The notes below the pieces were generated by a model that was not told where the DNA came from, did not search any database, and saw only the letters and a list, made by a program, of their open reading frames with translations. This document shows positions 32,499 through 36,965 of a stretch of 64,000 nt of DNA, piece after piece (position 1 is the first letter of the stretch; every line of letters begins with the position of its first letter). The stretch covers positions 124,001 through 188,000 of IMG/VR virus record IMGVR_UViG_3300042261_001312. One strand, given 5' to 3'. Made by a program: the position numbers and the translations under genes.

Positions 32499-32615
32499 GG
32501 AAACTGTTTGTTAATACAGTACGAATAACTCAGAGGATAGAGTGATTGCCCGTTAAGCAATATGCCGTTGGTTCAAATCCAACTTTGTAAAAACAAAGTA
32601 ACAGACGAAATGTCC
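32499..32615 (+). ncRNA. tRNA-Asn(GTT)-like RNA with acceptor stem extended by the shared ACAGTA/AAAAACAAA module
   Basis: Cloverleaf 32519-32591: anticodon arm ATTGC-CCGTTAA-GCAAT, T arm GTTGG-TTCAAAT-CCAAC. Outer helix TGTTTGTTA/TAACAGACG. Confidence 0.7.
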
Positions 32616-32630
32616 TTTTTAAAAATATAT

Positions 32631-32702
32631 TGTGGGGTAGAGAAGTGGCATCTCATTTGGCTCATAACCAAAAAATCGGGGGTTCGAGTCCCTCTCCCGC
32701 TA
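32631..32702 (+). tRNA. tRNA-Met(CAT), initiator-like
   Basis: D stem GAGA/TCTC (A11:U24), anticodon arm TTTGG-CTCATAA-CCAAA, T loop TTCGAGT, 1:72 T:T mismatch; no encoded CCA. Confidence 0.9.
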
Positions 32703-32707
32703 CAAAT

Positions 32708-32736
32708 GAAGAGTAATCTTCAAACGTTCTTTAATA
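32708..32736 (+). promoter_or_regulatory. boxB-like GNRA hairpin plus boxA-like element (copy 2)
   Basis: GAAGA-GTAA-TCTTC, then CGTTCTTTAATA. Confidence 0.55.
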
Positions 32737-32745
32737 AGATAATAT

Positions 32746-32882
32746 GGAGGGTTAGCAAAATAAAAAACAAAAAACATTATTTAACTACTCTTCTCATTGA
32801 GAGAACTCATGGTGTTTACAGTAATAGGTAAAGCAATTGTGTTGAAAACAATGATTTGTTGGTTCGATTCCAACACCCTCCA
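32746..32882 (+). ncRNA. tRNA-Ser(TGA anticodon)-like RNA with ~65-70-nt hairpin insertion in the D-loop
   Basis: Acceptor GGAGGGT/ACCCTCC, anticodon arm ATTGT-GTTGAAA-ACAAT, T arm GTTGG-TTCGATT-CCAAC. Insert 32757-32825 carries AAAAACAAA, the helix AAACATTAT/ATGGTGTTT and ACAGTAAT. Confidence 0.75.
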
Positions 32883-32932
32883 CGAGACGTTTTTTGTACT
32901 TTATAGTATTTATTATTATAAAGTACAAAAAT

Positions 32933-33574: not shown

Positions 33575-33603
33575 CAATACAAAGTGTGAGGTAGGGTATT
33601 GAA

Positions 33604-33742
33604 GGGAAAACGAAAAGTGTTTACAGTAATTCGTCGGTTCGAATCCGATATTGTTCGCCAAAAATGAACGATTAGCCTAGCGGTTAAGGCACAAGTCAGT
33701 GAAACTTGCATTAAAAACAAAAAATACTTTTAAAATGTTCCC
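33604..33742 (+). ncRNA. Circularly permuted tRNA-His(GTG)-like RNA closed by the shared module (YrlA-like topology)
   Basis: Order: T arm (33633-33649), acceptor 3' strand + G + CCA, AAAA linker, acceptor 5' strand, D arm GCCT/AGGC, anticodon arm CAAGT-CAGTGAA-ACTTG. Enclosed by AAAAGTGTTT/AAATACTTTT and a GGGAA/TTCCC terminal helix. Confidence 0.8.
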
Positions 33743-34052
33743 TAAATTTTTTGGTTGTTGATACCAGAGTTTTTTCATAAAAAACGGGGCGTATCACCTA
33801 ACATTTGATGGTTAAGAATGGTTTTGGCTTCAGAAGTGAAGTTTTTTTCAAAAATAATTTTATTTAACTATGAAAATAGTGAAGGTGACGAAGCCTGAAG
33901 TGAGGTTACACAAGGGTATCACACTAAGAAACCAGAAATGGTATCACTTTAATGGTGTGTGAAGCACGTGTTGGTTGTATATTAGTTTATATGGAAAATA
34001 CCTAGACACGGTTAGCAAGATTCCTGATAGAAGTCATCAAATGGTTAATTTG
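33743..34052 (+). ncRNA. Unidentified large structured RNA
   Basis: Long-range helix CATTTGATG (33802-10)/CATCAAATG (34035-43); GAAA-capped helices at 33867-80 and 33931-42; no ORF in the track. Confidence 0.55.
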
Positions 34053-34102
34053 GAGTGGGCGGGAACATGGTGCAGAATTGTGCCATCTCGCTCATTTTTT
34101 TT
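34053..34102 (+). terminator. Intrinsic terminator ending the RNA operon
   Basis: TGGGCGGGA/TCTCGCTCA with inner ATGGTGCA/TGTGCCAT, followed by a long T-run. Confidence 0.7.
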
Positions 34103-34188
34103 GTAGAAAATTGTAACATTATTGATTGAATATTCGTATAATGCAATAATGTAGATTTTAATAATTGTAAAAATTAAATTTTAAGACG

Positions 34189-35856
34189 ATGGAAAAATTG
34201 GTATTAACAAACAACATGGTGGTTTCAATCAAACAATCTTTGATTGAAGGTCTAACAGTTGCAAGCGGTGCAAAAAGTTCTGCAACCTATTACCACAGTA
34301 AAGACGAACAATTGAAAGCAATTCAGACTCAAATTAGGAATCAGTATTCGCTTTCAAAGGAACTCCCCTTGATTATAGCAAGTCAGAAGGGAGCAACGGG
34401 TCGATTTGTGTCTGAAGTATTGCTCAATGAGTTTAAACAGACACTTAAAGGCGGTGCGTGTAATATTGTTAATCCAATTGATTGGTATGACAATGGATTG
34501 AGTGATAAAGCAGTACTTACTGCATTAAATAATCTTGCAGAAAATGGTCTTCCATATGTTCTTCGTCTTTTCGTTGACTTGAAAGAAGCAAAAGTAAATA
34601 ACGAAAGAACAAGGAAAATTATTCTTGGATTTCTTTGGGGTCAAGCAAACCTTGAATTCTATTCAATGAAATATCGTAACAAGATTGCTGAAGTATTGAA
34701 ACACGTTTATGGTCAGAAGAAAACATCTATTTTGCTTTCAATTGCACGTAAACAACTCTATATGAATAACAACGGTGTTATTGTTACTGCAACTCAAGGT
34801 AGAAATGAAAATTTTAATTTTTTGGGTAGTGAAAAGGAAATTGCAATTGTAAATGATTGTATTTTGAAATATTTCAATGGTGATACTATGAAAGCATTTA
34901 AATTGTTACTTTTCTTGTTCAAAAAAGATGAAAATGTAAGTTACAACGAATTTCCGTTATTGAGCGAATATCAGAGAGCAAGGGTTGATATTACAAATAT
35001 TAAAAATGTTCCTGAAGAAGTATTGCTTGGTTTGATCTCAAGTGTAAAACACCCACAATACCACAGTATGTGGGCAACTAAAACACAAAGGGAAGCAACT
35101 AAGGCATTAATAAGGAAAAATGTTGAAGTAACATCAGTTAACCAACAAGTTCGTCAGACAAAATCAACTGAAAAGTTGGGTGTTGAGAAAACTGTTGATA
35201 TGGGAAAAGCAACTGATTTCATGGCTTTGTACAAAACAGGTTATGAAACTACTTTTACTGCTGAAATTCGTGACGCAATTGACAAACTTGCTGAAAAGAA
35301 AAAAATTCAGGGATTCTTCTACCAAAGTATCGGTATTATTGTTGACGAAAGTGCTTCAATGTCAGGTAATAAAGTAGAATCAAAGAATACTCCAAGAGCA
35401 ATTGCAGACTTTACTTCAAGAGTATTGTCAAAATCTGCAAAAAGTTCAGTTGTTTTTGGAACTGATGGTTTCACTACAGATTTGGCAACTGCATTCATTA
35501 GGTTGATGAAAGTTGAAGGTAATTCGCAATATGATGCGATCTTCATCTTAACTGATGGATATGAAAATGCATATGATGGATTAACAAATGAAGTTATTTC
35601 AATCTGGAAAGCAGAAACAGGTAGAGATATTCCAATGTTTCAGATTTCACCAATCACAAGTGCTGAAATGGGTGCAAATGTAAGAAAATTGGGTGAAGGT
35701 GTTGTCACAATGGCAATAAACAACCCAAGTGCATTGCAACCACAAATCAACGCAAGATTGCTTGAAATTGACACAAAACGTTGGTTGGAAAGTCAAGTAT
35801 TGGCTTTGGAAACAACACCTGTTAAAAGGACAAAAAAAATTAGTATTAACGCATAA
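34189..35856 (+). CDS. Helical-repeat + vWA (MIDAS) protein, TROVE/Ro60-like architecture
   Basis: Long helical N-terminal region; C-terminal IIVDESASMS...TDLATAF...ILTDGYEN vWA MIDAS motifs. The Ro60 relationship is inferred from architecture and context. Confidence 0.6.
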   Translation: MEKLVLTNNMVVSIKQSLIEGLTVASGAKSSATYYHSKDEQLKAIQTQIRNQYSLSKELPLIIASQKGATGRFVSEVLLNEFKQTLKGGACNIVNPIDWYDNGLSDKAVLTALNNLAENGLPYVLRLFVDLKEAKVNNERTRKIILGFLWGQANLEFYSMKYRNKIAEVLKHVYGQKKTSILLSIARKQLYMNNNGVIVTATQGRNENFNFLGSEKEIAIVNDCILKYFNGDTMKAFKLLLFLFKKDENVSYNEFPLLSEYQRARVDITNIKNVPEEVLLGLISSVKHPQYHSMWATKTQREATKALIRKNVEVTSVNQQVRQTKSTEKLGVEKTVDMGKATDFMALYKTGYETTFTAEIRDAIDKLAEKKKIQGFFYQSIGIIVDESASMSGNKVESKNTPRAIADFTSRVLSKSAKSSVVFGTDGFTTDLATAFIRLMKVEGNSQYDAIFILTDGYENAYDGLTNEVISIWKAETGRDIPMFQISPITSAEMGANVRKLGEGVVTMAINNPSALQPQINARLLEIDTKRWLESQVLALETTPVKRTKKISINA

Positions 35857-35867
35857 AAATTTGTACC

Positions 35868-36965
35868 ATGAATACAAGAGAATTTACAGAATTGTTGAAA
35901 GGTTGTCGTCCTGTCAAGGATAGTGATGGTAACATCGTAGTTCAGTCAATTATGAACATGCAAATTGTATGTTTAACGACTGATCCTGAATTTTCATTGG
36001 ATAGTCGCTTTGCGAATCCATTGACTGCTTTAAAGGCAGGTAACTCTTCATATGGTCAGATTAATTTCACTAATACTGAAAATAAGGAAGTTATTGTCCC
36101 AACTCAAATGGCAGTTGTGACTAAGCAAAGTGCTCAGAATCACGGTATGACTAAGGCTGGTTATATATCAGCCAAATCAAATACTGTTTATCGTGATGCT
36201 GGTTGTGTACAGGGTTCACAAACTGGTTACTTTAATGGTACTCAGGAATTCCGTATGCTTCCTGTCACAATGCGTGAAATGGTTTTTGACACTGTTGGTA
36301 AAGGAGAATCATATTCAAGGATTTATCCTGCAGTTGAGAAGTTAGGACGTGATACTCAAGCAAATACAGGTAATTACTTAAATATTTACTTTGAGAAGTA
36401 TGACAAGAAACTTGAGCAGTTTATTGCTCACTTTGAACGTCCAGCCAATCTGATTGGTATTATTGTATTGATTGATGGTGAAATTGTTGCAATAGATAAA
36501 TTCCCTTCATTCACATATGCTGAACAAGTTTGGGATTTAATGATTCGTGACTGCTATGGTTCTCTAGCAATTATTTCTGAATTGAAGAAAAAAACTGCAA
36601 GCAATCTGTTTACAGAAAAATTCAATGAAGTTAGAAAATCGCATCGTGAAAACATTGTTGATTTATTAGAATTGGCTTTGAAAAAAACAAAGCAGGATAT
36701 GACTGCAAATGTTCAAGATAGAATTAAAGAACTTCTTGAATTAAATTTTGATGCAACACTTGATGACGTGGGTCAACCTACTTCAAGGACTGCACCTAAA
36801 AGTTATATGTTGAAAACAGAGGGTTATATTGGTCAGGTAATAACCGAAAATGAATATAACCACATGGTTTCAGTGGTTAAAAGAGAAAGTTTTAACCCAA
36901 ATGCTTTCAGAGAAGTTAGCGAGTTAAGAAAAAAGGCTCGTAGACAAGAAAGATTCGGTTTATAA
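35868..36965 (+). CDS. ARPP-1/DUF6569-like protein
   Basis: AQNHGM...AGCVQGSQTG and LIGIIVLIDGEIVAID.F motifs resemble this family; directly downstream of the vWA gene. Confidence 0.55.
   Translation: MNTREFTELLKGCRPVKDSDGNIVVQSIMNMQIVCLTTDPEFSLDSRFANPLTALKAGNSSYGQINFTNTENKEVIVPTQMAVVTKQSAQNHGMTKAGYISAKSNTVYRDAGCVQGSQTGYFNGTQEFRMLPVTMREMVFDTVGKGESYSRIYPAVEKLGRDTQANTGNYLNIYFEKYDKKLEQFIAHFERPANLIGIIVLIDGEIVAIDKFPSFTYAEQVWDLMIRDCYGSLAIISELKKKTASNLFTEKFNEVRKSHRENIVDLLELALKKTKQDMTANVQDRIKELLELNFDATLDDVGQPTSRTAPKSYMLKTEGYIGQVITENEYNHMVSVVKRESFNPNAFREVSELRKKARRQERFGL

Follow-up and report, generated by a model that had tools for sequence, protein, structure and literature searches.

Stem-tagged tRNA-like RNAs upstream of a Ro60-like/ARPP gene pair in a jumbo phage: a candidate Ro60/Y-RNA-type locus of unusual form

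The DNA analyzed in this study is a stretch of 64,000 nucleotides (nt) from IMG/VR record IMGVR_UViG_3300042261_001312, referred to below as the window. The locus of interest (32496-36965) is carried at 100% identity on a 327,676-bp IMG/VR viral contig, and since its relatives are viral contigs of 300-365 kb, this is a jumbo phage. The locus contains three small RNAs, in each of which a tRNA-like cloverleaf is joined to the same non-tRNA stem, followed by a gene for a 555-amino-acid (aa) protein with a predicted Ro60-like fold and a gene for an ARPP-1 domain protein (Table 1). RNAs 1-3 lie 0.4-1.7 kb upstream of the Ro60-like gene on the same strand. A tRNA-Met without the stem stands between RNAs 1 and 2; it is found at the same place in nearly all related loci and follows a tagged tRNA in most relatives. 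For comparison, 75 related loci (60-100% identity) were collected by scanning viral contigs with the 555-aa protein, a bacterial scan with one genome per species yielded 62 loci, and seven loci of distant homologs (26-47% identity) were inspected by eye.

Table 1. Features of the stem-tagged RNA locus and its two protein genes, in window coordinates
Feature	Coordinates	Strand	Parts	Basis
Stem-tagged RNA 1 (acceptor-linked)	32496..32618	+	P1: 32496-32501 with 32613-32618; P2: 32506-32513 with 32599-32606; ACAGUA 32516-32521, its last bases extending into the acceptor stem; anticodon GUU, loop CCGUUAA (C33); A-rich strand 32589-32597	tRNA body 32519-32591 called by ARAGORN and Rfam
tRNA-Met (CAU), canonical, without stem	32631..32703	+		ARAGORN; Rfam 55.8 bits
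Stem-tagged RNA 2 (D-loop-interrupted cloverleaf)	32746..32882	+	D-loop stem hairpin of ~67 nt (32759-32825); A-rich strand 32763-32771; P1 hairpin 32791-32803; AAC 32804-32806; ACAGUA 32818-32823; anticodon UGA, loop GUUGAAA (G32); variable region 5 nt	RNAalifold on 30 relatives
GIY-YIG homing endonuclease, SegB-like	32933..33574	+		Pfam GIY-YIG and SegE_GIY-YIG; PHROG 314
Stem-tagged RNA 3 (circularly permuted tRNA-like)	33604..33742	+	P1: 33604-33608 with 33738-33742; P2: 33613-33622 with 33722-33731; ACAGUA 33623-33628; T arm 33633-33649; acceptor 3' strand 33650-33656; GCCA 33657-33660; linker; acceptor 5' strand 33666-33672; D arm 33675-33690; anticodon arm 33692-33708 (GUG, loop CAGUGAA, A33); A-rich strand 33713-33721	Alignment and pair counts, 37 distinct relatives
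Conserved element 3' of RNA 3	33743..33850	+		MAFFT of downstream flanks, 37 relatives
Ro60-like protein (predicted), 555 aa	34189..35856	+		AlphaFold2 (AF2) model and Foldseek
ARPP-1 domain protein, 365 aa	35868..36965	+		Pfam PF20208, 47 bits vs cut-off 27

An initial annotation of the window had placed in all three RNAs a helix ending in an internal loop, with ACAGTA at 32516, 32818 and 33623 opposite AAAAACAAA at 32589, 32763 and 33713, and all of these positions were verified in the sequence. So were the three places of attachment (acceptor end in RNA 1, D-loop in RNA 2, variable loop of the permuted cloverleaf in RNA 3), with covariation in about 30-37 relatives. The exact 12-mer GTTTACAGTAAT has two sites in the 64 kb (32814 and 33619), and the extended strand motif occurs in three copies in the window, all on the + strand. 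The shared module is thus present, but its extent had been drawn too small: it consists of helix P1 (5-6 bp), a junction with a conserved AAC-U, helix P2 (8-10 bp) and an asymmetric loop in which (U)ACAGUA faces the A-rich strand. The consensus of the strand motif among the relatives is G(R)RAAC-U-N4-6-GUKUUU-(A/U)CAGUA. What is widely conserved in the module is single-stranded, namely GGRAC-U between P1 and P2 and UWCAG(UA) past P2. The A-rich opposing strand, which had been noted in the annotation, is conserved within the AT-rich phage family but not beyond it, whereas GGRAC and UWCAG extend far wider.

Single-sequence folding gave weak z-scores (-0.3 to -1.7), and the structures were therefore taken from relatives, with covariation assessed by pair counts. 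In the acceptor-linked class, for which 17 phage and 14 bacterial copies were aligned, P1 is 96% paired and P2 87% paired, and 5 of 6 and 8 of 9 pairs, respectively, have changed on both sides. The covariation of the two helices (0.54 vs 0.20 in shuffled alignments) was not reached in any of 500 shuffles, and slid controls were at most 49% paired. In the permuted class (37 distinct sequences), 93% of cells are paired, compared with 79% after shuffling and at most 54% after sliding, and again none of 500 shuffles was as high. In this class, 23 pairs have changed on both sides, among them pairs of the acceptor stem (7/7), anticodon stem (5/5), T stem (3/5) and D stem (3/4); its P1 and P2 are almost invariant, with few compensations. 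For the D-loop class (30 sequences), RNAalifold without guidance returned an acceptor stem that closes over the insert and covaries in 5 of its 7 pairs, along with the anticodon arm, the T arm and both helices of the module. The module is a real two-helix rod, supported by covariation of P1 and P2 from phages to bacteria. Two other pairings were discarded in the course of this comparison: TTTGTT/AACAAA in RNA 1, which a single-sequence fold had proposed in place of the helix 32506-32513 with 32599-32606, and a short tRNA-proximal AAU/AUU helix in RNA 3, which is 46% paired and not conserved.

At least five RNA classes bear the motif in the 0.2-2.5 kb upstream of the gene in relatives: permuted tRNAs (class 1), tRNAs whose acceptor stem continues into the stem (class 2), tRNAs with a stem hairpin in the D-loop (class 3), and non-tRNA hairpins of about 74 nt (class 4) or 85-93 nt (class 5). 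Classes 1-3 are present in the window, and classes 4 and 5 are not. Because 62 distinct non-tRNA hairpins of the relatives bear the same stem, with classes 4 and 5 folding as P1/P2 with compensatory changes, the tag is not solely a tRNA appendage. The tagged cloverleaves themselves have canonical T loops and the D-loop GG. Most permuted copies have a 7-bp acceptor stem, then NCCA and then a loop, and 4 of the 37 have a closed acceptor stem without CCA.

Several side observations concern the module and its surroundings. At the position where most relatives have the 85-93-nt stem-bearing hairpin RNA, the window (33860-34110, a region of about 250 nt separating the terminator-like hairpin 3' of RNA 3 from the Ro60-like gene) shares an unrelated sequence with one related locus, L047. 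A strong terminator-like hairpin (about 34055-34108) closes this region, which includes a 29-codon open reading frame (ORF) that is not conserved in L047. In the distant locus L198, two different tRNA-like RNAs contain exact copies (4590-4627 and 4745-4782) of one 38-nt segment of the module, AAUACUGUCCUCCGCAUUAGCACUGAUCGUAUUUACAG, which suggests that the module can be copied between scaffolds. A loop-E/sarcin-ricin motif was considered as a candidate for the AGUA of the module. A hairpin-ribozyme-like site, suggested by the resemblance of ACA/GUC to ACAGUA, was rejected, as there is no Rfam match and the opposite strand has no AGAA.

In this region, the Asn-like tRNA (32519-32591) and tRNA-Met are the only calls made by ARAGORN and Rfam. 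RNAs 2 and 3 are not called, their cloverleaves being recognisable by eye, and an Rfam tRNA match to RNA 2 (32811-32882) stays below threshold at 23.7 bits; standard tRNA finders overlook such stem-tagged tRNA-like genes. When the window and seven related loci were searched against Rfam at the gathering threshold and at E values up to 10, only tRNA (RF00005) and chance matches were returned. With no Rfam family matching and the canonical Y-RNA motif absent, the suggestion that the tag may be a new class was a fair one.

The 555-aa protein comprises a helical ring (roughly residues 1-370) and, at its C terminus, a vWA domain with the MIDAS motif (for metal-ion-dependent adhesion site) D386-x-S388-x-S390. 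In an alignment of 61 homologs, DxSxS is invariant and is accompanied by a DGYEN motif, the vWA MIDAS signature; a full HMMER scan gave 325 representatives at 50% identity. The protein has no match in Pfam, PHROGs, NCBIfam or PADLOC, and neither phmmer nor the 61-sequence profile found anything among the PDB sequences. With all sequence libraries silent, it is the fold comparison alone that leads to the Ro60-like assignment. The AF2 model has a predicted local distance difference test score (pLDDT) of 91.4 and a predicted template modelling (TM) score of 0.90, and the top 10 Foldseek matches in PDB are all Ro60/Rsr (E 1e-7 to 3e-3, ~590 aligned columns). They comprise RNA-bound Ro60 of Xenopus and human (probability 1.0, E about 1e-7, TM about 0.5), Deinococcus Rsr and, at rank 10, the Ro60 of Thermus phage phiLo. 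Among the predicted viral structures of BFVD, the best matches that bear a name are a Gordonia phage 'Ro-like RNA binding protein' and a 'TROVE domain-containing' protein. The predicted fold thus indicates a divergent Ro60-like protein, lying outside the TROVE family model, in agreement with the initial annotation, which had named this gene TROVE/vWA-like.

The ARPP-1-like gene named in that annotation was likewise borne out, by a Pfam match above the curated cut-off (Table 1). Across 16 homologs, with identities as low as 28%, residues C113 and Q118 do not vary. The structure model (pLDDT 79) has no structural relative in PDB. In the definition of Iyer, Burroughs, Aravind and colleagues, ARPP is a domain of probable enzymatic nature, so far uncharacterised, that has a conserved Cys and Gln, occurs in ADP-ribose-related conflict systems and is predicted to act on ribose moieties (PMC9503650). 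The association of ARPP with the Ro60-like gene is constant over long distances: it lies directly 3' of that gene or one small ORF away in the distant loci L197 (39% identity), L200 (29%) and L201 (26%), and downstream of it in 56 of the 62 bacterial loci.

The stem is linked to the gene as well. When its motif was counted by regular expression in the 75 related loci, 280 copies on the gene's strand lay no more than 3 kb upstream of it and 4 lay elsewhere; the other strand had none. Viral contigs sharing a 14-mer with the motif numbered 120, mostly chance matches, and this set became informative after filtering for the extended motif: 13 contigs have it, and 9 of these carry the gene in the fetched DNA, compared with none of the other 107. 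Among the seven distant loci, the pair adjoins stem-tagged tRNA-like RNAs in four. L197 has four modules upstream, one of which forms the variable-loop hairpin of a non-permuted Tyr-like tRNA and one of which lies in a D-loop. L198 (32%) has a D-loop insert and, as judged by eye only, a tRNA-like RNA (~4708-4842) with the module at the anticodon position, and L202 (32%) has three modules. In L200, two tRNAs with flanking leader/trailer helices lie downstream of ARPP, and UUUCCGAG stands in place of the window's UUACAGUA; this UUUCCGAG resembles the canonical Ro-binding GGUCCGA/GNCGAA (PMC4201824). No module was found in the fetched DNA of L196 (47%, a 3.6-kb contig) or L201.

The bacterial loci belong mainly to Planctomycetota (Pirellulaceae), Myxococcota and Bacteroidota; cultured carriers include Rhodopirellula sp. 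SWK7, Thalassoglobus neptunius KOR42, Stieleria magnilauensis TBK1r and Minicystis rosea DSM 24000. Most of these Ro60-like/ARPP pairs sit inside dense same-strand tRNA arrays, with up to 35 tRNA genes in the 6 kb of flanks; in Minicystis rosea (L222), for example, the gene is preceded within 3 kb by 21 tRNA genes and followed by 14, and dense arrays were also seen in L207, L218 and L225. About 30 of the 62 loci have a generalised stem motif just upstream of the gene, and this motif is rare on the other strand. Within the arrays the stem is confined to the RNAs nearest the gene, and most array members have no room for it. The planctomycete loci L215 and L227, which were read directly, contain a tagged tRNA and a non-tRNA hairpin each. 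In Rhodopirellula and Novipirellula, the region immediately upstream encodes a stem-tagged tRNA of the form CGAGRAC-UAGCACGUCAUUACAG, tRNA, AUGAC...CCUCG, as well as a non-tRNA hairpin with GGGAACU...GUCAAUUCAG. Pirellulaceae have a constant tRNA-Cys, followed 23 nt later by a stem-tagged tRNA with a variable anticodon. The earlier expectation that the tag would be conserved, covary and co-occur with the vWA gene therefore holds for the 75 loci as well as for distant phage and bacterial homologs. In the literature, no paper was found that joins tRNA arrays with Ro60, with the Ro60-like/ARPP pair or with stem-tagged tRNAs. Given the tRNA-array context in bacteria, the interpretation has to be wider than phage counter-defence.

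The anticodon loops of the three window RNAs depart from the consensus as had been read, and the neighbouring tRNA-Met is canonical (Table 1); this does not extend to the family as a whole, since most loops of the relatives have U33. Departures are concentrated in loops with GUN anticodons, where non-U33 is found in 7 of 7 distinct loops versus 9 of 36 others (Fisher p = 4e-4, with some loop registers mis-called). The tagged tRNA before tRNA-Met has an almost constant body, and its anticodon differs between close relatives (gtt, gtc, atc, caa, taa, cgt, ttt, tga, ttc, tct, cct, cgc, tat, gca, tca and tta). The anticodon of the permuted RNA varies likewise, and the tagged tRNAs of Pirellulaceae have ctt, ttt, tag, atg, att and acg. 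Overall, the phage family has at least 25 distinct anticodons on near-constant bodies, with entropies of 1.5 and 1.9 bits at loop positions 33 and 34 and of 0 in most T-loop and ACAGUA columns. A34 anticodons (AUU, AUG and AUC) are present, and Leu and Ser anticodons of the relatives occur on 72-76-nt bodies without a long variable arm, which bacterial tRNA-Leu and tRNA-Ser require. Of the features of a decoding tRNA, the cloverleaf, T loop and D-loop GG are present, and U33/purine 37 with a matching body is not found in the window. tRNA-guanine transglycosylase recognises U33-G34-U35, and colicin E5 prefers the context YGU; avoidance of UGU in GUN loops would allow escape from enzymes of these two types. 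A diversity-generating retroelement was also considered as what might make the anticodons vary; no reverse transcriptase was found among the 28 Pfam-scanned ORFs of roughly 50 in the window (no dedicated search was made).

Taken together, we consider that window 32496-36965 is probably a Ro60/Y-RNA-type ribonucleoprotein (RNP) locus of unusual form, in which the ring protein would bind the stem and present tRNA mimics, with ARPP as a partner. One + strand transcription unit, or a few, would produce small RNAs that share the rod-like stem, and by analogy with the Y RNA stem and Ro60, this stem would be the docking site for the ring protein encoded downstream. The tRNA-shaped part would be displayed to factors that recognise tRNAs, and the linked ARPP protein may serve as effector or partner. 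Because the loops vary on constant bodies, include anticodons of non-decoders and avoid U33 in GUN, the RNAs would be mimics rather than ordinary decoders, possibly acting as decoys, baits or repair/quality-control handles towards enzymes reading or cutting the anticodon loop. Given the RNP core, a role in anticodon-loop conflicts, as decoy, bait or repair platform, can be proposed tentatively.

Several observations weigh against this interpretation. The Ro-binding motifs GGUCCGA of animals and GNCGAAN0-1G of bacteria are absent from the three window RNAs. Pfam TROVE does not match the protein, the 61 homologs give weak vWA matches only, and the TM-scores to Ro60 are just about 0.5. With 54 bits in Rfam, the acceptor-linked RNAs are good tRNAs by score, those of the relatives mostly have U33 and a purine at 37, and they could be working tRNAs after RNase P cleavage and 3' trimming. 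The anticodon statistics count distinct sequences rather than independent evolutionary events. Moreover, as the bacterial gene pair is located among ordinary-looking tRNA arrays, its role may be tRNA supply or maturation and not mimicry.

Alternatively, the stem might be a processing signal of unconventional tRNA genes, excised by an endonuclease and a ligase, with RNase P opening the acceptor loop to give decoding tRNAs and the Ro60-like protein at most chaperoning precursors. The three attachment topologies agree with those reportedly described for bulge-helix-bulge (BHB)-processed tRNAs by Soma et al. in 2007 and Randau et al. in 2005. Each cloverleaf is complete and has a canonical T loop and the D-loop GG, the acceptor-linked copies score as tRNAs, and most permuted copies encode NCCA right after the 7-bp acceptor stem. 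There is also a precedent in Mycobacterium smegmatis YrlA, whose 7-bp stem is cut by RNase P and gains CCA, both halves remaining Rsr-bound (PMC4201824). However, the junction is not a BHB (3-nt bulge, 4 bp, 3-nt bulge) but an 8-10-bp helix with an asymmetric loop of ~6 by 9 nt, and the same stem occurs on the 62 non-tRNA hairpins; on these two grounds a BHB-type splicing signal was rejected. The closed permuted copies without CCA, the Ser/Leu anticodons on short-arm bodies, the A34 anticodons and the GUN loops without U33 do not suit decoding tRNAs either, and GGRAC and UWCAG are conserved across phyla more strongly than would be expected of a removable spacer. The 28 window proteins scanned with Pfam, of roughly 50 window ORFs, include no RNA ligase or splicing endonuclease, a result that covers neither the rest of the ~330-kb genome nor the host. 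We regard such a processing signal, the main alternative to the RNP, as unlikely. A simpler proposal, that the stem is transcript punctuation of a polycistronic tRNA operon (RNase III/E-type) and that its adjacency to the gene pair reflects general tRNA clustering and not a specific partnership of protein and RNA, appears highly improbable. Many polycistronic precursors do have leader/trailer helices flanking their RNAs, the RNA operon here includes a plain tRNA-Met, and the bacterial homologs lie in dense arrays most of whose members have no room for the stem. Punctuation does not explain, however, a stem within a D-loop, a variable loop or a permuted cloverleaf, nor single-stranded motifs kept from phages to Planctomycetes between covarying helices. 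In bacterial arrays the stem is found on the gene-nearest RNAs only, and in a divergent protein lineage the RNA motif shifts from ACAGUA to UCCGAG.

The RNAs might also be more than passive decoys, namely the bait arm of a tRNA-damage sensor or repair system, in which the Ro60-like ring would hold the tagged mimics and cleavage or modification of the loop by an invading nuclease would alter the particle and switch on or recruit ARPP; the bacterial version would guard the adjoining tRNA array, and the phage copy would have been captured and used against host anticodon nucleases. The position of the gene pair inside large tRNA arrays of Planctomycetota and Myxococcota is in line with this, as is the tRNA nearest the gene in Pirellulaceae, which has a variable anticodon on a constant body, is stem-tagged in L215 and L227 and has the motif in many other loci. 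ARPP would supply the enzyme, being predicted to act on ribose (PMC9503650), with its Cys and Gln invariant here as C113 and Q118. In Salmonella, rsr-yrlBA-rtcBA is induced by damaged tRNAs (PMC7790460), and tRNA arrays, which are co-regulated with rtcB, have been proposed as sponges for toxin RNases (PMC8421152). All of this support is purely contextual, though: the PADLOC defence models match neither protein, the ARPP fold has no characterised relative, and the inspected loci have no nuclease, toxin or regulator as a consistent neighbour. This specific sensor seems improbable, even more so than a processing signal.

Returning to the RNP interpretation, its most general form would be that the Ro60-like/ARPP pair and the stem-tagged mimics constitute a widespread system, not recognised before, for surveillance or counter-surveillance of anticodon-loop attack, in which damage to or capture of the bait is coupled to the ARPP enzyme. 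It would guard the mobile tRNA arrays of bacteria and neutralise tRNA-cleaving defences of the host in phages, ranging over jumbo phages, Planctomycetota, Myxococcota and Bacteroidota. We consider this generalisation doubtful at present; if true, it would provide the first functional rationale for the tRNA-like domain of bacterial Y RNAs. The purpose of that domain has been a question since 2014, and a complete mimic with a fast-changing anticodon loop suggests partners that read or cut anticodons, which is testable. The locus also points to a Ro60-like clade that is missed by current protein models, has a constant ARPP partner and an RNA motif outside Rfam, and is connected to long bacterial tRNA arrays, which are themselves poorly understood. 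In addition, natural grafts of a putative protein-binding stem at the acceptor end, D-loop and variable loop may be of use in RNA scaffold engineering.

As to the setting of the locus, the window has a G+C content of ~31% (AT-rich), and its + strand holds nearly every long ORF. Replication genes (5'-3' exonuclease, DnaB-like helicase) lie upstream of the locus and virion genes downstream (Pfam, PHROG). The SegB-like ORF between RNAs 2 and 3 has ~70% DNA identity to T4 segB over 270 nt, and T4 segB likewise lies within a tRNA cluster. As it is present in only 9 of the 75 related loci and at varying places, it is considered an independent mobile insertion outside the system. In the conserved element following RNA 3 (Table 1), the first hairpin has a covarying stem (UGAUAC/GUAUCA, UGGUAU/AUACCA, CGGCAC/GUGUCG) that encloses an inner U6/A6 hairpin; the invariant CCUAACAUUUGA comes next, and then a terminator-like hairpin with a U run. 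This element is kept in most relatives and has no Rfam match.

A scan of the locus for sigma-70 promoters and terminators was uninformative. Just 5' of the first RNA (32440-32470) there is a TAtgTTTG, which resembles the Bacteroidota -7 promoter element, TAnnTTTG, and this promoter-like sequence hints at a Bacteroidota host. One homolog was binned as Porphyromonadaceae and one contig as 'Paceibacterota', probably mis-binned phage. Farther upstream, two LAGLIDADG-type homing endonuclease ORFs (7766-8821 and 9519-10559) occur among glycosyltransferase genes. The block of genes for sugar nucleotides and glycosyltransferases at 8808-19532 includes a GDP-mannose 4,6-dehydratase, a UDP-GlcNAc 2-epimerase, a PfkB kinase and three glycosyltransferases, and may serve glycosylation of DNA or virion.

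Among known systems, Rsr with YrlA/YrlB of Salmonella, M. smegmatis and mycobacteriophages shares with the window a ring-plus-vWA protein, several same-strand RNAs within a few kb, a long stem formed from distant segments and one permuted tRNA-like RNA, and it is likewise known in phages and bacteria. Y RNAs of bacterial and phage Ro60 genes are found within 4 kb on the same strand, several per locus sharing the stem (Chen et al. 2014, PMC4201824). In YrlA, the permuted tRNA-like domain has the order V, T, closed acceptor-like stem and D, and the Ro-binding stem replaces the anticodon stem (PMC4201824). The window differs in that its protein is missed by the TROVE Pfam model and its RNA motif is GGRAC...UWCAGUA and not GNCGAAN0-1G. 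Its stem leaves at the variable loop, D-loop or acceptor end instead of replacing the anticodon stem, and a full anticodon arm (5 bp/7 nt) is consequently displayed. Further differences are the hypervariable anticodons, ARPP as the constant partner in place of RtcB/RtcA, and the lack of an Rfam match.

Jumbo phages occasionally encode TROVE proteins, and the Ro60 of phage phiLo binds two Y-like RNAs encoded upstream (Yrl1/Yrl2) and the host PNPase (PMC12135203; PDB 9L5Y, 9KOP). The phage-encoded Ro60 and two Y-RNA-like genes just upstream of it recall the window, whereas the phiLo RNAs are plain stem-bulge-stem structures with CGAA and no cloverleaf, no ARPP has been described there, and the proposed partner is host PNPase. 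In the Rsr/Yrn1/PNPase particle (RYPER) of Deinococcus radiodurans, the Y RNA precursor is polycistronic with a tRNA and the Y RNA tethers Ro60 to an effector, which is comparable to the arrangement proposed here. A T arm and what may be an anticodon-like arm are present in Yrn1 (PMC4201824); the window, in contrast, has full cloverleaves with 7-nt anticodon loops, and ARPP is the sole constant neighbour.

The BHB-processed tRNA genes of the red alga Cyanidioschyzon merolae and of Archaea, which may be permuted, split or interrupted by introns, offer a parallel of another kind, in that RNA 3 has its 3' half first, RNA 2 has a non-canonical insertion and RNA 1 has a leader/trailer helix, with one shared RNA element at all junctions. 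The element of the window is not a BHB, however, is also present on non-tRNA hairpins, is linked to a ring protein and not to an endonuclease and ligase, and occurs in a setting of bacteria and phages. Certain phage tRNAs have substitutions in the anticodon loop by which they escape host anticodon nucleases, and the odd loop residues found here are likewise in GUN-anticodon families targeted by known nucleases. Those tRNAs are free-standing and functional, whereas the RNAs of the window are stem-fused and one of them is permuted.

As for tRNA arrays, which have homing endonucleases and rtcB as neighbours (PMC8421152), the bacterial gene pair is located within dense same-strand arrays and the window has its SegB-like homing endonuclease, but just four tRNA-shaped genes. 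Therefore, the locus would be of a known kind, the Ro60/Y-RNA particle, and what is new in it is the protein clade, the ARPP partner and the RNA motif, together with the grafting of the stem at several tRNA positions, the free-running anticodons and the tRNA-array context.

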